Positions 3,701 to 64,000 of a stretch of DNA of 64,000 nucleotides are shown here, piece by piece. The translations under genes were made by a program, and so were the position numbers. The stretch's first letter is position 1, and each line of letters starts with the position of its first letter. Below the pieces are notes generated by a model. The model ran no database searches and was not told the origin of the DNA. It saw only the letters and a list, made by a program, of their open reading frames with translations. This DNA comes from Utricularia gibba. Its lineage: Eukaryota; Plantae; Magnoliophyta. The stretch lies in assembly GCA_002189035.1 (NCBI GenBank), contig CM007990.1:2542001-2606000 (forward strand). The letters run 5' to 3'.

Positions 3701-4557
3701 CGAGAGCTTTCAGTCCTTTACAGTCGCTTTTGTGAGTATATTTCTTTCTCCTTTTCTCAATCATAACCCAAGGCTTGTTTTGTTGCAATAAGTATAAGGT
3801 GTTTTCATCGAAAAGATCTGAATACAAATGTGCCTGTCTACCTGCAGATGGAATCCTTTTAGGTGGGATTCTCATAATGTATGAGTTTCATAAGTTTCTG
3901 AAGGCCATTGTTCTCTTTCTACATTCCTTTTGGATTCACCAAATTGTCACCAATGTGATTCGGGACTTGAGGAAGCCATTGCATCCTCACTATGTGCTGG
4001 GAATGAGTATCACTCGTATGGCATTCCCCTTGTATGCATTCAGCTGCCCACATAACTTCATGCGTATCGCACCCGACCACAACTGGTGCATGGCTTTAGC
4101 TGTTTTCGTGGGACTCCAGGCCTCAATCCTTGTAGTGCAGTATTACTTTGGATCTCGATGTTTCATCCCTCGTCAGGTTTGCCTCACCTGCCCAATGTGT
4201 ACATTACAAGTAGCTATTTTTCAGAGTAAATGAAACATGCTTCATATGCCACAGATTTTGCCGGAGAAATACAGCTACTACCGGCGACTGAACCAGGGAC
4301 CAGGGATGGATTGTGTTATCTGCATGACTCCAATCGACCTGATGCAACGTTCGGGAGATTGCATGGTATCCGATTGCAGCTTGAAAATGCTTAGGCTTGG
4401 TTAGTGTTGCATAGTATTGGATTGTCTGATGATGACTACTCTGTTGCCTTACCAGGTAACTCCATGCGATCACTTCTTTCACTCGGGATGCCTTCAAAGA
4501 TGGATGGACATCAAAATGGAGTGCCCTACATGCCGCCGGCCCCTTCCTCCGGCATAG
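743..4557 (+). CDS. FLY1/2-like: Transmembrane E3 ubiquitin ligase, FLY1/FLY2 (yeast Tul1) family, C-terminal RING-H2
   Basis: GT-AG exons read by hand: 743-871, 1244-1316, 1740-1867, 2112-2227, 2509-2569, 2653-2719, 2803-2877, 2953-3110, 3207-3266, 3376-3469, 3561-3731, 3848-4176, 4255-4365, 4456-4557. Signal peptide MESCK...SVNG; motifs WNITGTYRG, TKITGVHYVQG, YYNKAINY, FEMRYLLAIWKA; TM helices; RING-H2 CVICM...TPCDHFFHSGCLQRWMDIKMECPTCRRPLPPA*. Probable 5'UTR intron 45-705. Confidence 0.93.
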
Positions 4558-12106: not shown

Positions 12107-12634
12107 TGTTATGGGTGAAATCAGTATCGGGTGGGAGGCCGATTTAAGATGATAGGTGCGATCAGGAATGACACACTTAGTCACGTTCTTCACGGTTGGT
12201 ACGATTGAAATAAGAATGAGCAAAGATTTTTTACGTGGAAACCGCAGGAAAGCGGAAAAACCACGGAGCTGCCGGAGCTCGCCGGAAAAGAGCTTCACTA
12301 GATGGAGGTCGCAAAGAGGAGAATACAAATTGAAGAAATCTTTTCAGTCCAATCCCCTCTCTGTTGTGGTTTCTTCTACTTATAAGAGATTTCGACCTGA
12401 CCGAGTCCTGGTGTCTGCAAATGTCGGCTGTCTTGTCCCCCTACTATGCGATCTCGCTTTTCAGATATCGGTCGTCTGTCATGCCGTAATTCGGCCACTT
12501 TTCAGACTGTGTCATGTGGTCATATCTATAAGATTTCTGACAGATATCAGTCTATCGGCCGACATTACCCCCTCAGGATCTCTTTTGGCAGCTTTTCTGA
12601 GATCGGCTGATTATACCCGATTTGTACCCCATCA
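12107..12634 (-). repeat. 3' LTR
   Basis: TGTTATGGGTGAAATC...GTACCCCATCA, direct repeat of 18158-18685. Confidence 0.95.
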
Positions 12635-13095
12635 TTTAACCCCTCTGATTTGCCGATATTGGCCCTTCCGGGTAAATCAGGGAATCAGAATTAATACTAT
12701 GCCGATTTCAAGCCCACTACTTTTCATGAGGGAGCCTCAAATCGATTAAGACCGAATTTCTTGCCACGCGTCACCTCTTGGGCTTGCCACGTTTTTTCCC
12801 GCTCATTCTGGGCATTGTAAACGACGCATCGTTTCGTCTCCCAAGTATTTCTCCTATTAATAGACGTTCTTTCCGTCATTTTTCCCCTTTGCCTTCTTGG
12901 TTCGCTCGCGTGATTTCAGTGCTTCCTGAACTCCGTCGCGCTCACCCATCACGTTTGGCGCCGTGAAATCCGTCGGAGAAGGAAGTCTTCAAAGGTACCA
13001 ATCTACCCTTCATCTCTACCGCTCAGTCTTTTGGGGGCTCGCTTTCCCCCCTTTTTTGGGTCTTTTTCTCCTAGGGTTCTTAGTTTTTCCGCTTC

Positions 13096-15243
13096 TTGAC
13101 TCCCTCAACTACGATAGGTAGAAAATCTAGTGAATTGAACATCCCCGCCATTCGGACCAAATATTTGATTCACGATGAGTACATCGTTAGTCCTGCCAGG
13201 GATAGTCAGATACCGTGGGGGACAGGGGAACGACCCCTTCCCAGATTCAGCCATCCTATCCCTATAGCTTACTTGGAGAGCAGTCTCCGCTTTCCGCTCC
13301 ATCCCCTCATCATTCAATTCTTGAACATGTTCTCCGTTCCTCTTTTCTGTCTTTCCCCCAACTCAATATTCTGTTTCACCACCTTTCTCTTCTATTCCGC
13401 GGGTTTGGACCCGAATATGACTCTAGTGGATTTCTTCTAACTTTTCATAATTGTCGTCTGTAAGGCTAAGCGCCCCCTGCATGGTTTCTCTCATTTCCAA
13501 TTTCGCCGATTTGAAGACCACCCCGATTTCGTCCTTAGAGCTCCGGATACCCATCATAACTGGTGGTCATCCTTCATTTGGGTCGCTCCCCCATCTGGAG
13601 CCAGGTGGAACTTTCCGATTAAGCCCCCCGTGCCTTTCTAAGTGAAGCTTTTCGGGCGTTTCCGTCCCTCTAATGAATCTCGTAGGGAGGTATACCGGAG
13701 ACTAGGTGAATGCTCCACTAGATTCGAGTCTCGGGCCCTGATGCTTTCACAAGAATCCTTATCGGCATGCGGAATTCTTGGTCATGACCGGGATGGGCAG
13801 CGGCCCGACTTTCTTATTCCTCCGGGTTCCGATTTGGAGTATCGACTTCTTTTGCAATCTCCACATAATATCCCTTCTGGCTCGGCTATACTCCCTACCT
13901 CTGAATTGATATCCCCTCTTCCCTCTGATCCGGCCCCCAAATCCCCTACTCGGCCTTTAACCCAAAACAAGAGAAAAAGGGTTAAGGTTTCTGTGTAGGG
14001 ACCTCCTAAAAAGCGAAGAGGTAGCCAGGTTCTGCTTCCTTATCTTGTAATTTCTTTATCGCGTTTCATCGTTTTTTCGGCTTTGATATGCAGTTGAGAA
14101 GATGTCTCAACGGAACGCTTTGGAAGATTTGGTGATGGCACGCTTTTCTGCTGAGATGCACCGAATGCCGGAATCGGGTGCGACTCCTTCTGCACAGGTT
14201 TGTCTAACTTCTGGTGGCCCGTTGCTAAGAGTCTCTGATTCTAACCTTTCAACTTTTCTCCCAGGCCGATTCACCCTCAGCTCACTCGGATGCTGCCGGT
14301 CACCTTCCAGAGGATCAAGTGGTTGAGGTTTTCGGGACTCGGGAAGTGACTCCTCCCCTGTCGGGAAAAGGAAAAGAAAGGCTTCCTCCCTCGCCGATAT
14401 CCAGTGAAGGTCCCATTCCCGGCACTGGGCTTATTTCGGTCGATGCTTCCACATTGATCCCTCCAAGTAATGTGGGGGGGATTCCTATTCCTCCAATTCA
14501 AGTAAGGGAGGATCCTGCTCTTCTCCCCTCTTCAGTCCCCGCGGAGCTGCGAAGTGCTTTAGAGGAGGCTACCCCGAATCTTTCGGGAGTTCAGCCAGAG
14601 ATTGTACTTAAAGGGATTTGGCAGGTACTCTCTCTCTCTTTTGGAATCATATATATCCGGCTCCTTACTTACCGATTTTGTCCTAGGCTTTGACGTTCGG
14701 ATGAGAGATGGCCAAGGAAATGGGGTCCCATTCGAAGGAAGTTTCTCAGCTTCAGGCTCAACTGCCAAGATAAGGTCAATGGGGGAGGAAGGGAGCGCAT
14801 TGAGAAGTATGCTTGGGAAGCGTACCCACATAGAAGAGGAGTTGCAGAACATGGTTAGTGAAATGGGGAAGGCAATTGACGACGCCAACTCCGAGAAGGA
14901 AGGTTTCAAGGTGCAACTCGAGGAGGTTGAGGCAGAGTTGAAACAAACCAAGGATCGTGTTTTGGCCCTGGAGGCGGAGCTGCTCAACATGGAGGCATCT
15001 CGCGGAAGGCTTTTGGAAGACTTCGTGAACTCGGCCTGCTTTTTCGAGTTATCAGATATTTACGCTGGGGATTTAATCGGCCTTCTCTTGTACCGGTAGA
15101 GGCGTCAATTCAGCCGGGAGTTTGGGCTATCCTTTACCGATCCGCGTTTCGCAGGGATTGACCCGCTAAAGAAGGATGAAAATATGTTGGATGTCATTGC
15201 CGACATATATCAAGCTCCGGAGTTCGGGTTCGAAGCTGATTGA
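13096..15243 (+). pseudogene. Spliced antisense accessory gene of the Tat element (Transposase_28-like domain, basic NLS-like patch, coiled coil), decayed
   Basis: ORF pieces 13096-13440, 13642-13998, 14102-14197, 14265-14624 and 14687-15243. Motif SLRFPLHPLIIQFLNMFSVPLFCLSPNS. Frame-preserving GT-AG introns at 14021-14093, 14198-14264 and 14625-14686. Premature stops at 13438, 13996, 14702 and 15097. Confidence 0.7.
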
Positions 15244-15897
15244 GAGCGGCTGATTGTGTTGATTCGGGCGAGGACAGGGTGAGAGAATGACGCCAAGCTG
15301 AGAGCAAGGATGGAACTACATACCGGTTCCTCTGCAAATCCTCCCGTTAATCCCCCATCCCCTCCTGCACTTTAATTTTTGACTTGATGTTTTTCCCCCT
15401 GCTGTTGGGCTTTTGGATATTTTTGGTCTCCCAGTTCGGGGTTGCCTTCTAATTTACTCTGTTTTTTGCGCATCACTTTTGCCTTTGGTGATATCATATT
15501 TCGGGGGAAGCCCCGAGTCATTTTGTTGTGTCTATCACGTGCTTAGGCTTGGAAGATTCGCCTATGCTTTTGTGATCCGGGGGTCTCCTCGCCAACCCTT
15601 TGGTTGGGCTTTTTGATTTTAGTTTGCCTTAGTATTTCCTCATGCGAGCTGAACCGCTACTAGGGAAGTAGGTCGTAACCCCTCATGGGTTGAGCGACTT
15701 CCCCAATCCGAAAGGGCCCTCTTTTGGCCATACCCCATTGTTTTGAACATGGATGGATTTGCTTTGGGTGCTCTTGCCGCCTCGAGATTTCGACAGTGAG
15801 GTCAATACTTTGGAGGAATTTGTAGGCGCGTGAATGTTTTGAGGAAGGGAATGTCGAATCTTGCGTAATCCTGTGATAGAGATTGATATTGGGCCGG

Positions 15898-16731
15898 TTA
15901 GGCGTAGAACTTCCTTAGGTGCGATGCGTTCCACGACCTCGGGAATTCCACGCCATCCAATTGTTCCAGGCGATATGCTCCTTTTCCGATCACCCTTGAA
16001 ATTCGATAAGGGCCTTCCCGTTGTCGGTCTAATTTCCCGACGTGTTTCTGTGGTTGGATGCTTCGGAGCACCAAATCTCCCTCAGAGAATTCTCTAGGAG
16101 ACACCAACTTGTTATATCGCTTCTCCGTTCTTCTTTGATGAGCCCCTAGTTGGCTATAGACATTTTGCCGTTTTTCTTCCAACAGCTCCAACTCCAACTT
16201 TCGCAGGTCGACATTCTCTTCTTCGTTGTAATGCTCTACCCAATAGCTTTTCAAGGTCAGTTCGATAGGGCATATGGCTTCCGAACCGTAAACCAATAAG
16301 AATGGGGATTCTTCCGTGGTGGTTCGAGGGGTGGTGCGATATGACCACAGCACTTCATCCAAGCGATCTATCCATGATCCTCCAAAATCTTCAAGCTTAG
16401 TCTTCATACCTAACCTGAGCGTTCGATTCGTTACCTCTGTGAGACCATTGCTCTGCGGGTGATACACCGAGGTGAAGTTGTGCTTGACCGTATATTTATC
16501 CAAGAATGCCTCCATTTTTCCTCCGGGCTTCGGGACGACGACTGGGTTAGCTACCCACTCGGAGTACTGGATCTCCTTCACATAACAAGCTTCCAAGAGC
16601 TCGCTTGTTTTTTCCTTGATAATTCGACACTTTTCCACTGAGAAATGCCGTTGCTTCTGCCGAACCGGTTTTGCCACCGGGTAGGTTTCAATGTGGTGCT
16701 CGGCAACGGATCGATCAATGCCTCTTCTCAA
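15898..16731 (-). pseudogene. In-frame fusion of the RT N-terminus to the integrase C-terminal half
   Basis: GIDRSVAEHH...EWVANPVVVPKPGGK (RT start) runs directly into MEAFLDKY...YHPQSNGLTEVTNRT...VLWSYRTTPR...EGPYRI...WNASHLRKFYA (integrase core end and C-terminal domain). Confidence 0.85.
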
Positions 16732-18010
16732 ATTCCGTGTCCATCGTTGACGTGGGGTTCCGTACCGCGTTGTTTATCCCCCCGCTAGCATGATATTGCT
16801 CGATCATCCTCTTCATTACTCGACAGTCGGCAGTTTCATGCCCGGTGGTCTTGTGTATTTCGCAGTAGGCATCTGTTCTGGTTGGTTCCACCTGATACAC
16901 TTCACGGCGCTTATTCGGTTTGAGCCCCCGGTTAGGTTGGGTCTCTTGCTACGGGATTGGGCGGATCTCCACGCGGCTTTTCATCTCGGCTCTAAGGTCG
17001 TCATCAACTCGGATATACTTCATGATTTTCCTTAGCAATTCTCCGAGATCCTTTGGTGGGGACTTCGATAGACTCTGTCCTAATTTCAACGTTCCTAAGG
17101 CCGCTTCATTATTTCCACCCTTTCCTTCAAATCTAACTGGACGTCCTGCGCCAAGCAGTTGAATCGGTCGATGAATTTCCTCAAGCTTTCTCTTCTGTGA
17201 TCATACCGAATGGAGTACAACGCTGCCTTTGATGATGGGGCTTCAATGTTGACAGCATATCGGGTAGTGAAGAGTAGCACCAACTCCCGATAGGACCCCA
17301 CGCTATATGGTTCTAACTGTTTGAACCAGATCTTGGCTCCCTTATGGAGCGAGCAGGCAAACAACTTACACTTCATGGCTTCAGAGTGCCGGACCGTGGC
17401 CATCCTCATGTCGAAGTCGGTAACGTGAGATATAGGGTCTCCCTTCCCATCGTAGGTGGGCAGTCCATCGGGGACTCTGAATCCCCTTTCGAGCTCCTCT
17501 CGGATCAACTCATCGGAGAAAGGATCAAAACAAAGTGCAGGGGTCCTCGCAGTTCCTTCAACACTATTCTTCAAGGCTAAGATCAATGTCGGCAAGGACG
17601 TCTCCTCTTCCGGTGTGGACGTTCTGGTCGAAGGCGTCCCTGAAGCCCCTACTCTCTTTCTTTCCCGGTGGCGTTCGAGCGGCGATGAGCTTTTGTCTTT
17701 CCCGGATCTGATCCAATTCTCTTTTCAGCTCTTCTTCCCTTTCTTCCAAGATTTTTCCAGCAATGTTTTCCCTATCAGTTCCTGGCTCATATATGACTTT
17801 GTTACGCCTCTTTCTTCGCAGCATCTCCTCCTCGGTTTCGGATTCAGTCTCCGTGTCCGGTGGGTAATCCGGAATAAGAGGTTGTTTCTCCATTCGTGGT
17901 GTAGTTTCGGGTGTTCCCTCCTGAGCGTTGGAGTTGAGGCCTGAAGGTGCCCGGAGGTCGACGAGGATTTCCGTTAGCAGGGCTTTCAGTTGCTCCCTGT
18001 TGGTGATCAT
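16715..18010 (-). pseudogene. gag of the Tat element, frameshifted
   Basis: ORFs 17564-18010, 17095-17595 (LPTYDGKGDPISHV, KCKLFACSLHKGAKIWF, F...RY retrotransposon gag) and 16715-16900 (YCEIHKTTGHETADC knuckle). Confidence 0.85.
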
Positions 18011-18157
18011 AAGGCCGAGGTCTCGCGCGTCGGCGCTTCCGTCCTGAGTCAGGTCGGTGGCTGTGCTATTTTCCGCTATGATCCGTGATTAACGGGTGGT
18101 TCCTGTGGGTTTCTCGAGTGGGGCTGTGGAACGTAGCCCCACGGTGGGCGCCAAAAA

Positions 18158-18685
18158 TGTTATGGGTGAAATCGGTATCGGATGGGAGGTCGATTTAAGA
18201 TGATTAGTGCGATCGGGAATGCCACACTTAGTCACCTTCTTCACGGTTGGTACGACTGAAATAAGAATGAGCAAGGATTTTTTACGTGGAAACCGCCGGA
18301 AAGCAGAAAAACCACAGAGCTGCCGGAGCTCGCTGGAAAAGAGCTTCACTAGATGGAGGTCGCGAAGAGGAGAATACAAATTGAAAAAATCTTTTGAGTC
18401 CAACCCCCTCTCTGTTGTGGTTTCTTCTACTTATAGGAGATTTCGACCTGATTGAGTCCTGGTGTCTGCAAATGTCGGCTGTCTTGTCCCCCTGCTATGC
18501 GATCTCGCTTTTCAGATATCGATCATCTGTCATGCCGTAATTCGGCCACTTTTCAGACTGTGCCATGCAGCCATATCTGTCAGATTTCTGACAGATATCA
18601 GTCTGTCGGCCGGCATTATCCCCTCATGATCTCTTTTGGCAGCTTTTGAGAGATCGTCTGATTATACCCGATTTGTACCCCATCA
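18158..18685 (-). repeat. 5' LTR
   Basis: Direct repeat of 12107-12634, adjacent to the PBS on the - strand. Confidence 0.95.
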
Positions 18686-30709: not shown

Positions 30710-31650
30710 TAGGAAAAAAGGCTTCTTTATCGAGATGGCACCGAAGATGCTGGCTCTCGGAGGAGATGGCACCTGGGCGTGGCGCTTGTTTTGGTAGTAT
30801 TAATTTTTTTCTATGGGGTTTCTCTTTCATTACAATTTTCATTCTCAGAAATCCTTGCAGCGAAGTCTTGGGACCAGCGATGGCTTTGACCCATTGCAAC
30901 AATTAAGTCCTTTCTCTTATGATCCCTATGTACAAGTTCTGCATAGACCTCAACTTGAAGGCACTTCTGGTGACTTTCGATATCATGGCGGAGGTGGGGC
31001 TGCGGTTTCCTCCCCATTCTTTCATCACCCGATTTCTAATTTCTTTGAGCATTTCCATCTACGCCCAGCACCAACACGTCTTCGCCATCCTTGTGGCTTA
31101 TCATGTTCTTGCATAGAGATAGAATATCCTATCTTTTTTGGAGCACCTTCTGGGTCTCTATGACCTGCGAAATAAGGTCATTTCTGGCTTCAAAGAGTAG
31201 TCATGTGGACGTTCAAAGCCATTTTCACTTTTGTTCCCCAATCAAGCCTCGCACAACAGGGTGGTCATGGTGGATTGGGAACATCGAATTCCTGATCTAG
31301 ACAGCCCCTAGCCATGTCCAAAATTTCTCAATTAAACGATACAAGTGGGCTCAGACTGTATCTCTGATGGTTAGTTGCCTTCCGGGTGATGCAATGATAT
31401 ACTCAATTCTTCATTTTCGCCGAAATCTATGATCAAAGGAGCATGATCCCGAACAGAGGCTCTTTGGATTCTTCCACTTATTGAGGTGTGCCTGATTGGG
31501 AAACCATCATTCTAGCTGAGCTGACGGGGGTGTGATTTAAGCAGCGCCCCGCAGCACCAATGGAACTTACCTCAACCTTTCAATAAGTTCCTATTGAGCA
31601 AAGTGTAAAACATGATCGCAGGTTCTAGGAACCTCAAATCACTGAATATA
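30710..31650 (+). mobile_element. Isolated decayed Transposase_28-like ORF relic of the Tat accessory-ORF type
   Basis: GC-richer island in AT-rich DNA. AEVGLRFPPHSFITRFLISLSISIYAQHQHVFAILVAY resembles SLRFPLHPLIIQFLN at ~13280. No LTRs found. Confidence 0.5.
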
Positions 31651-44800: not shown

Positions 44801-45718
44801 CTGTTTTCATGAGATTTTTCTATTTCTCACTCCTTCTACAAAGGAGCACATAACCTGAAGAGGATCCTTTTAATTTTACGATATACCATGACTAATGAAT
44901 AAGAGTAAGAATGAATGGCAAGGACTAATATGATCACCTTCAGCACATTCACCAGCTTCTTCAGCTGTTCTGTAACTTGGTGAAGCACCTTTTCAGTTCC
45001 AGATACCACTATAGTAAAGAGAGCCTTATCCTTGTTTAGTCCAACTGCAAGAGATTCAATGTTGTAGCCTCTCCGAGCAAAAACTCCAGCTATTCGGTTG
45101 ATCATTCCACTTTCATCACCAACAAATACGGAAATAGTGTGGCATTTCACCCTGATTCGAAATTAGTGTGGCGTTTAGGGGGCCTTCAGCAATACAAAAG
45201 ATTGCAAAGAACACAACTAGCTTTGAAAATAAAAGGATCTGATGTCAAATGAGCAAAATGTATATTCAACAGTTAGACATAGAATGTAAGATTTTAGGTT
45301 CATTTTGGCACCAGGCATCATACAGATATGAAAACAATCATGTAAAAAAATTGAGCAACACTGGCCATGAATCATGCATGACAAATATTCTGTCTACGAA
45401 ACAAATAATCATTTGCTACTACCAGGAATTTAAACAACAATAACCAAAAACTGATATTAAAAAACTCAATGATGAACAATAAAAGTACTTCGAGCTTGCA
45501 GTAGAGCCAGGGGATGGGGCGGCAAGGGTAGTAGACTGTGAAATCGAATGCGCACCATCCTGTCGCTGCTTCTGATCGTCGCCAGAACTTTGAGCACAAA
45601 TAGCAAAGCCATTTCTTGAATTTGATGGTACAATCATAGAGCCATTATTACGGAAAATGAAGCCCCTGGAGTGCCAGGAAGTAAGAAATGTAGTAGAGGA
45701 GGAGGAGAGTGCCGCCAT
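41859..45718 (-). CDS. AHASS: Acetolactate synthase (AHAS) small regulatory subunit, plastid, with two ACT repeats
   Basis: Exons (-): 45718-45489, 45151-44938, 44279-44196, 44093-44025, 43886-43803, 43728-43582, 43492-43406, 43235-43131, 43040-42918, 42649-42497, 42416-42351, 41948-41859. Motifs [42 protein letters not shown] (twice), [32 protein letters not shown]. Probable 5'UTR intron 45990-45744. Confidence 0.95.
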
Positions 45719-48270: not shown

Positions 48271-49741
48271 ATGGCCGCCCCAAAATCACTCCAACATCTG
48301 CTTCTCCTCATCCTGATCGCCTGCACACCGGCGGCAGCTGTTACATACAATGTGGAGTCCTTCGGCGCCAATCCCAAAGGGAAATCAGATTCTTCCAAGG
48401 CCTTTCTCCGCGCCTGGTCTGCAGCGTGTGCCGCCGATAAGCCGGCCACCCTCTACGTTCCGCCGGGGAAGTTTCTCGTGAGACGAGTGGAGTTTAGTGG
48501 CAAGAAATGTACAAGTGAAGCCACTGCTCTACGTATAGACGGCACCCTGGTGGCTTCATCCGACTATCGCATCACCGGGAGCCTTGGGAATTGGCTGAGG
48601 TTCGAGGGGGTCACCGGAGTCAGCATCTACGGCGGAAAGTTGGAGGGCCGAGGTGGCGATCTCTGGGCATGCAAGAAATCCGGCAGGTCATGTCCCAAAG
48701 GAGCTACGGTGAACTTCAAAAAAACTCACATTTTTTCATATATTTATTTCAGCAAGCAATGCTTGTGTTGCATGGAATGAATCATACCTGAGCTGGGTTG
48801 TTTACGTGGTGCAGCAGTTGGGGTTGTACAACTCGAGCAACATAAGGATCAACGGACTGTCGTCCTTCAACAGCCAAATGTTTCACGTTGTGGTGGAAGG
48901 TTGTCACAATGTGAACCTGATGAACATGAGGATCTGGGCCCCTGGAACAGCCCCAACACCGATGGAATCCACATCTCACATTCCACACGTGTCACCATAA
49001 CAAATTCCCACATCGGAACCGGCGACGACTGCATCTCCATCGGGCCCGGCTCCAGGGACCTGTGGATCGAGAACCTGTCCTGCGGCCCTGGGCATGGGGT
49101 CAGGTACTGTACTGCAACTCAATGCTTTTCATAAGCAATTTGGGAGTAAATTAGGGTAAGCATCTGTACTGCACTGCACTGCACTGCAGCATTGGGAGCT
49201 TGGGGTGGGATCTTGAAGAGGCGGGAGTGCAGAATGTGATGCTGAAAGGCGCAACATTTGTGGGAACGGAGAACGGGGTGCGGGTGAAGACGTGGGCAAG
49301 GCCCAGCCATGGGTACGTACGGGACGTCGTCTTCCAGCGCTGTTTGATGGTGAATGTGAAGAACCCCATCATCATCGATCAGAATTACTGCCCAAACAAC
49401 CTCCACTGTCCCCATCAGGTAACCATTTCTTCTTCGTAGGGTTGGCCGTAGCCAACAACAATATGAGTTACTCCATGGGGGTTGGGTTGGTTGTTCACGT
49501 AGGCCTCGGGGGTGAAGGTACGGAATGTGACGTACCATGACATACACGGAACTTCGGCGATGAAGGTCGCGGTGAGGCTGGAGTGCAGCAGGGCGTCCCC
49601 TGCACTGGAATCACGCTGGATGAAGTGAATCTCACCTACGGGGACGAAGCCGCCGCCGGCTACTGCTCCAATGCCGCTACTCGGACTGTCGGACTCGTCA
49701 CCCCTCCTGCTGACCACACTGCATTGCATTGCACCTACTAA
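48271..49741 (+). pseudogene. Polygalacturonase (GH28) with two apparent 1-bp deletions: null allele or assembly error
   Basis: Exons 48271-48708, 48815-49103, 49190-49418, 49503 to ~49741. Signal peptide; motifs SPNTDG, TGDDC, CGPGHGV-SIGSLG and RVKTW all present. The frame shifts at ~48945 (cctggaacagc) just before NTD, and again at ~49600 (tcccctgc) before CTGITL. Confidence 0.9.
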
Positions 49742-62329: not shown

Positions 62330-63141
62330 ATCAAGGCCCCAAATGAGAGTCTCTCATTTGAACTAATGTGTTATGCAAATGATCTACTATGTGTCCAAGT
62401 ATCTTGATAATGCCTAGAAGATATACACCATAATAGAAAAGAAGCTATTGGCCATTGTCTTTACCTTTGAGAAATTTCAATCATATTTTCTTGGAGCTAA
62501 GGTCATAGGATATTCGGACCATGCCGCAATGAGATATCTTCTTACCAAGAAGGATTCAAAGCTTAGACTCATTTGATATATCTTATTGCTTCAAGAATAT
62601 GATTTGGAGATTAATGACAAGAAGAGATGCAAGAATCTAGTGGAAAATCACCTTAGCCAAATCACTTAGAAAAATCAAGTCTTATCGATGATAATTTCCT
62701 GTACAAACACTTATTCATGATCCATGAAGACAGTCCTTGGTACGCTGATATTATAAATTATTTGGTGACTAGGCAATTCCTTGAAGATTTCCATCACTAC
62801 TAGAAGGAGAAACTAAAGAGTGACGGCTTGAATTTTATTTGGGACGATCCATATCTCTAGAAAATTGATATTGATTAGATTATTAGGAGATGCATCCCTC
62901 AAGATGAAGTGCACTCTATTCTTTCCCATTGTGATAAGTTGCCTTGTAATGGACACTTTGGTACAAAAATAACTGCAAAGAAGTTCTTGGAAGCTGGATT
63001 TTATTGGCCTACAATATACAAGGATGTCTATCTTTATTGCAAAGCATGCCCAAATTGTCAAAGAGAAAGAAACTTGGAATACAAGAATCAAGTGCCCCTT
63101 CAACTCATTATCATGTGTGAGATTTTTCATACGTGGAGCAT
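62330..63141 (+). mobile_element. Degenerate Athila-like pol fragment (RNase H and integrase zinc finger)
   Basis: [49 protein letters not shown]; SILSHC...GHFGTKITAKKFLEAGFYWPTIYKD...CKACPNCQR; EIFHTWSID. Confidence 0.85.
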
Positions 63142-64000
63142 TGATGACACACATTTTCTCTGAATTTTATAATAAAAAATAATTATATTTTATTGTGGTT
63201 TAGGTTAGATAAATGTGGTTTTTCATGTTTATGTGTGTTTAAGTTAATTTGTGTGTTTATATTAAAAAGTGGACTAAATCCTTTGATTTAGTCCACCACC
63301 TTTGTTACTAATGTTTGACTAAGTTCAGCAGGGAGATCAACCGAAAAATCAGACTTATAAATGTGTAGAACAAGTGAAAAATGGCGACATACCCGAAGAG
63401 AGACAAAGAGCATTGTTCTGCCGCCGCATGCAGTTTGCAAGTTCAAGTCGGGAACAGTGATGGGGTTAGGAACAGTGCAATGGAGTGAAGGAGGGGAGAT
63501 ATTTTTCGAAAAGGGGATAGAGCGGGAACAACAAAGAGCGGAGGAGCGCAGAACACATGCAAGGGGGTTTCTCCCCCAACGCGAAAAAAAATACCAATTA
63601 GAAGAGGAGAAGGAGGCCCTCATCGTCAAGAGCAGCACCAGAGCCCAGTCCAGCGCTACTATTCCGACCTGTAAATAGTAGCAACAGGGTGACAGAACAA
63701 TCTTTATTTCCTTTCAGTTTTATGAACGTTTCGAGTTTCTGTATCTGACTTGCTTATAATGTTCCTGTTATTTTCGCCACATTATTTGAATTGAATCGTG
63801 TTTTCTTTTCCAAGTATGAGTAGCTAAAGCCTTAGGGATTTCTTAAGGTGAAGTATGGTGGTGTGTGCTTAGGGTTAATAATGAAATTTATGTTTGTATC
63901 TTAGCTCTTGTTTCTATCAATCCATGGATAGACCTAAGGAGAGGAATAAGTAGCTTCACAACTTAGATGCTTGATTTAGAGGTAGACTAACAAATCAAGA
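63142..64000 (+). mobile_element. Start of another Athila-like LTR, running off the window end
   Basis: The integrase reading is cut at TGATGACACACATTTT. An AT-rich start, GC-richer middle and atgagtagctaaa...tagg motif recall Athila LTRs. The second LTR is not visible. Confidence 0.55.

Follow-up and report, generated by a model that had tools for sequence, protein, structure and literature searches.

Does the DNA between the integrase and the 3' long terminal repeat (LTR) of an old plant retrotransposon, read on the strand opposite to gag and pol, hold one gene divided by introns, or a row of separate open reading frames (ORFs)? The question is raised by a 64,000-nucleotide stretch of Utricularia gibba DNA (contig CM007990.1, positions 2,542,001 to 2,606,000), which was analysed as a whole and is called the window here; it is plant nuclear DNA with a G+C content of 37%. 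Positions 12107-18685 of the window are an LTR retrotransposon of 6.6 kb on the minus strand, and a gene-like unit occupies positions 13084-15243 on the plus strand. An earlier note, made from the letters of this DNA, had placed such a unit on the strand opposite gag-pol, in the region from the integrase to the 3' LTR of a Tat/Retand retrotransposon, and its coordinates hold. We conclude that the unit is probably a dead version of the accessory gene that the Retand lineage carries in antisense orientation, split by introns and carried by a pol-deleted, non-autonomous element.

From the integrase stop (15898) to the 3' LTR (12634) the minus strand did not contain any long ORF, and the unit was strongly coding-like on the plus strand. 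Three stops (13438, 13639 and 13996) were present in the 312 codons of frame 1 from 13084 to 14020, compared to about 20 in each of the other two frames. Frame 2 was then open from 14087 to 14323 (a stretch containing exon 3), frame 0 from 14229 to 14690 (154 codons, containing exon 4) and frame 1 from 14563 to 15096 (178 codons, containing the coiled coil). Successive frames overlap by 8, 95 and 128 nucleotides (nt) at junctions 1, 2 and 3, respectively. The exon layout derived from these frames, together with the features of the host element, is given in Table 1.

Table 1. Coordinates of the retrotransposon and of the antisense unit in the window. Introns are predictions; a slash marks a predicted splice site.
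Feature	Position	Strand	Basis
3' LTR	12107-12634	minus	TG...CA ends, 528 nt after trimming
Polypurine-tract-like short run (AGAGGGG, minus strand)	12635-12646	minus	adjoins 3' LTR; inferred by reading the sequence
Putative leader exon and leader intron	12960-12994 and 12995-13074	plus	splice motifs
Exon 2: TRP28 N-terminal region, conserved extension, basic patch	13084-14020	plus	frame map, alignment to relatives
Transposase_28 (PF04195) core, SLRFPLHP...LSPNS	13267-13395	plus	Pfam E=6.8e-4, 20.3 bits
Bipartite basic patch (KRKRVK ... KKRR), candidate nuclear localisation signal	13966-14019	plus	broken by stop 13996
Intron 1, 73 nt, GAG/GTAGCC...TGCAG/T	14021-14093	plus	most T-rich 65-nt stretch of the gene, 99.6th percentile
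Exon 3 (V-EKMSQRN...PSAQ, 34 full codons)	14094-14197	plus	open in frame 2; in phase with exons 2 and 4
Intron 2, 67 nt, CAG/GTTTGT...TCCCAG/G	14198-14264	plus	strong donor/acceptor filter passed
Exon 4: Pro/Ser-rich linker, 120 codons, stop-free	14265-14624	plus	frame 0 open
Intron 3, 62 nt, CAG/GTACTC...GTCCTAG/G	14625-14686	plus	strong donor/acceptor filter passed
Exon 5: coiled coil and C-terminal tail	14687-15243	plus	terminal stop 15241-15243
Remnant pol ORF	15898-16731	minus	Pfam rve_3 (residues 81-108), SH3_Tf2-1 (residues 219-275)
gag ORF	17095-17595	minus	PF03732 Retrotrans_gag, E=4e-9
Primer-binding site	18137-18153	minus	starts TGGCGCC, 4 nt from 5' LTR
5' LTR	18158-18685	minus	528 nt, TG...CA ends

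The three introns that the earlier note had drawn between the coding exons begin with GT, end with AG and join the frames exactly as claimed. None of their lengths is a multiple of 3, so the removal of every one of them is needed to keep the frame, and after splicing all of the pieces share one frame. The four predicted donors, that of the leader included, read AG/GT and the acceptors are all YAG. The T fraction was 0.47, 0.39 and 0.42 in introns 1, 2 and 3, compared to 0.24-0.30 in the exons, and of the five non-overlapping 65-nt stretches richest in T, among about 33 in the gene, three are those in which the coding introns lie. The translation of intron 1 is hydrophobic, unlike its flanks. 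A branch-point motif, CTAAC, stands about 21 nt before the acceptor of intron 2, and CTTAC stands 17-21 nt before that of intron 3; intron 1 has no clean branch-point motif.

Bridging a junction in frame with a bare GT-AG pair is trivial, with dozens of candidates at each junction. We defined a strong pair as an AG/GT donor followed at 55-120 nt by a Y-rich YAG acceptor, with frequencies taken from the window itself. Such pairs occurred about 1.2 times per kb in the window, and the number expected in frame at any one junction is about 0.02-0.13. On this evidence, all of it internal to a single copy, the reading with the best support is that of three coding introns, which are likely to be genuine. 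In the case of the leader intron, also drawn by the earlier note, the splice motifs are good, and its AAG/GTACC donor, T/C-rich body and CCTAG/G acceptor pass the strong-pair filter, but we treat it as a conjecture.

The abundance of in-frame GT-AG bridges arising by chance leaves room for the view that the unit consists of separate, unspliced antisense ORFs, a TRP28 (Transposase_28, PF04195) ORF and a downstream 'Smc-like' coiled coil, which would be independent cistrons or unrelated remnants with coincidental GT-AG pairs between them. Exon 3 does contain an internal ATG, and published surveys describe ORFs only, often two reverse ORFs per element. However, the spacers are rich in T and bear donors, acceptors and branch points that fit the consensus; exons 3 and 4 (34 and 120 codons), in which a Pfam scan found no domain, would be left as domain-less orphan ORFs; and splicing puts all of the pieces in one frame and in the published domain order. 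Separate ORFs are thus an unlikely explanation. The frame changes could also be read as decay, the progenitor having been a single intron-less ORF, the three changes being frameshifts and the predicted introns being degenerated coding sequence. Decay of this copy is evident, as the intron model itself leaves five stops and one frameshift, and at junctions 2 and 3 a simple indel within the 95- or 128-nt overlap could switch the frame, but the overlap at junction 1 is just 8 nt and all three switches fall at T-rich, hydrophobic-reading stretches bounded by AG/GT and YAG. Moreover, three frameshifts in addition to the other lesions would be many at a per-lineage LTR divergence of 3.5% with hardly any indels, the LTRs aligning gap-free over 528 nt, and we consider an intron-less progenitor highly improbable.

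Membership of the unit's N-terminus in the Transposase_28 family is well supported by the sequence comparisons. The motifs SLRFPLHP, LSPNS and HHNWWSSFIWV, from which the earlier note had proposed a Transposase_28-like N-terminus, are present, and relatives of this region carry PF04195. An exhaustive HMMER (phmmer) search of 1.84 billion representatives with a 114-residue piece gave four matches. Only two were genuine relatives, P0002, a Cuscuta campestris protein (PF04195 at 49.2 bits), and P0003, an ENA protein, both of which carry PF04195. The two remaining matches, P0001 and P0004, were dismissed as low-complexity artefacts. A word-index search seeded with P0003 added only two further relatives, and P0007 carries PF04195. 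The alignment to P0003 begins at its methionine, covers residues 10-114 and runs on through the stop at 13438 in the window; the alignment of exon 2 to P0003 and P0006 passes through the same stop (local read-through with X at the stop). PF04195 was present in 20 of the 30 nearest ESM Atlas clusters of the TRP28 piece. The columns invariant with the relatives (LRFPLHPL, P88-N89 and F97) fit the published TRP28 core motif R-F-P-L-H-P...P-N...F, compared here by pattern. With two true matches in 1.84 billion representatives, this family is very divergent compared to the known Retand TRP28. Word-index searches with the TRP28 piece and the coiled-coil ORF gave no matches among proteins of 0.55-1.75 times the query length, a range that leaves out full-length relatives of about 640 residues, as the longest stop-free query to be had from this copy is 178 residues.

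The other parts of the protein listed by the earlier note, namely the NKRKRVK and PPKKRR basic patch, the Pro/Ser-rich linker and the coiled coil, are all present. The linker has 19 Pro and 14 Ser per 120 residues. The coiled-coil exon gave weak Pfam matches to many coiled-coil families and weak NCBIfam matches to SMC models, and its ESM Atlas neighbours were generic coiled coils. Elsewhere in the window, a lone TRP28-core-like 'GLRFPPHSF' stands at 30919-31116 on the plus strand (71% to P0002 over 14 residues, without Pfam or profile support), which may be an old fragment or chance; the marginal motif matches at 30919-31116 and 63469-63597 were not significant.

Under the exon model the copy has five in-frame stops, the three in exon 2 and those at 14702 and 15097; a single frameshift lies somewhere from 14759 to 14776. 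No in-frame ATG was found at the start expected from the relatives. The earlier note was right that the copy is broken, while its count of four stops and about two frameshifts has to be replaced by this one. With its five stops, its frameshift and no start codon in the expected place, this copy cannot yield a product.

Several observations weigh against an intron-split TRP28 gene that simply decayed after insertion. Intron 1 narrowly fails the strict filter, its acceptor being weaker (9 of 15 pyrimidines). An AG/GT...YAG pair as strong as the others lies at 13118-13199 (plus strand), inside sequence that aligns to relatives as coding, and motifs alone are therefore not proof of introns. At junction 3, an alternative intron (14625-14769) would avoid both the stop at 14702 and the frameshift, with a poor acceptor. 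A simulation at the per-lineage LTR divergence expects 1.8 new stops compared to the five observed (P of five or more about 0.03), and some of the damage to the gene may date from before the insertion of this non-autonomous copy. A second copy was absent from the window by tblastn and a local profile hidden Markov model (HMM), and related loci were not found in viral or metagenome contig collections. HMM and structure searches had been proposed by the earlier note as a check, and they gave a divided result. The PF04195 profile did match, with the E-value in Table 1, but at 20.3 bits it stays below the gathering cut-off of 26.2 and covers profile positions 5-47 of 69, the domain being cut by the stop at 13438. 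The AlphaFold2 model of the TRP28 region, built from a 5-sequence alignment, was poor (pLDDT 55, pTM 0.45), and Foldseek found nothing below E=3 for it in the PDB, so a biochemical activity is without support from a fold match.

An antisense TRP28 ORF between pol and the 3' LTR is a published hallmark of Retand elements (PMC11963269, PMC6317226), a lineage-wide feature seen in monocots and eudicots (PMC11963269). Neumann et al. 2019 reported Transposase_28 in 23% of Retand elements (PMC6317226), and in the survey of Vicient 2025, 97% of the recently active Retand clusters had antisense TRP28 ORFs, a trait described there as characteristic of the lineage and given a proposed regulatory role through DNA binding (PMC11963269). 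Across 63 clusters the latter survey counted 104 antisense ORFs, the second ones bearing the labels Smc, polIII or mitotic checkpoint, and its Additional file 5 lists some clusters that have two reverse ORFs in every copy (PMC11963269). The review of Vicient and Casacuberta 2020 described Grande GENE23 as nuclear and as having its own promoter, proposed a nuclear accessory role and called for a search for spliced antisense transcripts (PMC7264820).

The unit resembles the Retand TRP28 ORFs (Silene Retand ORF4, rice RIRE2 and maize Grande gene23) in its position between pol and the 3' LTR, its antisense orientation and its N-terminal TRP28, and its coiled-coil exon gives the same weak SMC-type matches as the second antisense ORFs that carry 'Smc' labels. 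It is well supported that the gene itself is not new, being a decayed copy of this known kind. The published Retand TRP28 are plain ORFs, whereas here four coding exons are apparently split by introns of 62-73 nt. Introns in the Retand TRP28 gene are unmentioned in PMC11963269, PMC7264820 and PMC6317226, the word 'intron' occurring 0 times in the 2020 and 2025 papers, and no description of them was found in the wider literature searched, the scope of which did not include Steinbauerova 2012, Kejnovsky 2006 and Gomez-Orte 2013.

The host element is Retand-like (Tat clade, Ty3/gypsy), an assignment that is supported by the length of its POL-3'LTR region and by the antisense TRP28, its own reverse transcriptase (RT) and RNase H being deleted. 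The POL-3'LTR region (12635-15897) is 3,263 bp long with the TRP28 gene on the opposite strand, and this length falls within the published Retand range of 2,933-6,566 bp (PMC11963269); the size of the LTRs is likewise within the published range. Introns are typical of cellular genes and gene capture by LTR elements is documented in the literature, and the unit might accordingly be a captured host or DNA-transposon gene, a passenger of this one family without any role in the life cycle. But its position, orientation and domain match a feature that is found throughout Retand, in monocots and eudicots alike, which points to old cargo that has been kept, not to a single capture event, and we regard a captured passenger gene as quite improbable.

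If the unit is instead a dead Retand accessory gene, its working counterpart would have a promoter of its own, situated towards the 3' LTR within the internal region, and would be transcribed antisense to the genomic RNA. The three short U2-type introns would be spliced from the antisense transcript, and the intron in the 5' untranslated region would possibly be removed too. The genomic (sense) RNA would carry these introns as CT...AC; they would therefore never be removed and would be copied at every reverse transcription. The survival of antisense introns through reverse transcription, as the earlier note had argued, follows from this logic of retrotransposition and has a precedent in the Drosophila non-LTR retrotransposon TART, where the splicing of antisense introns was shown by rapid amplification of cDNA ends and expressed sequence tags (PMC1636488). 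The TART introns also lie opposite to the transposition intermediate and so persist through retrotransposition; the antisense transcripts of TART are without a significant ORF, whereas the introns predicted here would interrupt a protein-coding gene (PMC1636488).

The product would have about 640 residues. TRP28 and its conserved extension would be N-terminal and the coiled coil C-terminal, and between them would come first the bipartite basic patch and then the Pro/Ser-rich linker. We infer that this protein would enter the nucleus, dimerise via its coiled coil and act in trans on members of its own family, with TRP28 binding nucleic acid or chromatin, and hence that it would regulate either transcription of the element or the steps that the element undergoes in the nucleus. 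The layout would be analogous to that of HBZ, the antisense gene of human T-cell leukaemia virus type 1 (HTLV-1). HBZ is spliced and makes a nuclear regulatory protein with a bZIP (leucine-zipper) coiled-coil dimerisation region. As discussed in PMC11963269 together with related retroviral antisense genes, it is likewise an antisense gene near a 3' LTR; splicing, nuclear site and regulation are the points in which the unit may resemble it further. The two share no sequence homology, and HTLV-1 is an infectious retrovirus whereas the element here is a retrotransposon of a plant. The earlier note had looked instead to the VANC anti-silencing factors, a speculation that is unsupported here: Pfam scans of every exon at E up to 1 found no DUF1985 or VANC-like domain, and VANC belongs to another transposon class, the VANDAL (Mutator-like) DNA transposons. 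The likeness lies solely in the idea of a transposon-encoded accessory nuclear protein.

The Pro-rich linker and the coiled-coil exon would attract labels of the Smc, polIII and mitotic checkpoint type, and therefore the second antisense ORFs of other Retand elements may be exons of the same gene. We put forward tentatively, as a possibility that is for the present less than even, that the antisense extra ORFs of Retand across flowering plants (TRP28, 'Smc', 'polIII' and 'mitotic checkpoint') all belong, as exons, to a single antisense gene that is conserved, spliced and protein-coding and that keeps its introns because they face away from the genomic RNA. If so, a major plant retrotransposon lineage would encode an HBZ-like regulator, and a protein-coding spliced antisense gene would exist in an LTR retrotransposon, which is not described in the literature searched. 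In many plants, crops and wild species alike, much of the genome consists of Retand elements, and what antisense TRP28 does is recognised as an open question. Should the gene be spliced, surveys based on ORFs have listed its exons as separate proteins, which may help to explain the 23% of elements in one survey compared to the 97% of clusters in the other. The correct protein for expression and localisation would then comprise TRP28, the patch resembling a nuclear localisation signal, the linker and the coiled coil. The antisense introns would also give an RNA-seq signature, junction reads separating expression of the accessory gene from genomic RNA.

The element is non-autonomous and old. A 532-nt blastn match at 92.9% identity relates the 12107-12634 region to 18154-18685; the trimmed LTRs differ at 37 positions (7.0%), 27 of which are transitions. 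The 5-mers flanking the LTRs, TAAAT and AAAAT, agree at four of five positions as a target-site duplication. The start of the primer-binding site is not of the tRNA-Met type and may be of the tRNA-Arg type; a tRNA scan found no tRNA genes in the window, an Rfam scan of the window was likewise empty, and a literature search gave no match to the primer-binding-site string. In the remnant pol ORF, an RT-start motif, read from the translation, is joined straight to the integrase C-terminus, indicating that the protease, most of RT, RNase H and the integrase core have been deleted. Intact Retand elements measure 8-14 kb (PMC11963269), whereas this dead copy, with most of its pol missing, measures 6.6 kb. 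The archaeal-type RNase H domain that Retand elements carry between RH and INT (PMC6317226) belongs to the segment deleted here. A zinc knuckle of gag at 16823-16865 (minus strand) reads C-X2-H-X4-H-X4-C and not CX2CX4HX4C, and may be degenerate or a variant.

Other features were seen in the rest of the window. A second Ty3/gypsy pol fragment, with RNase H-like and integrase zinc-finger motifs, lies at 62448-63163 (plus strand) and heads towards the window end. Two host genes each have an exon on the plus strand, a plant DUF2921 gene of the transmembrane E3 ligase type at 3775-4233 (Pfam, 133 bits) and a GH28 polygalacturonase-like gene at 48271-48780 (PF00295 and PF12708 matches). Two minus-strand stretches, 44836-45150 and 45419-45718, resemble in translation the ACT-domain and Ser-rich transit-peptide exons of an acetolactate-synthase small subunit.

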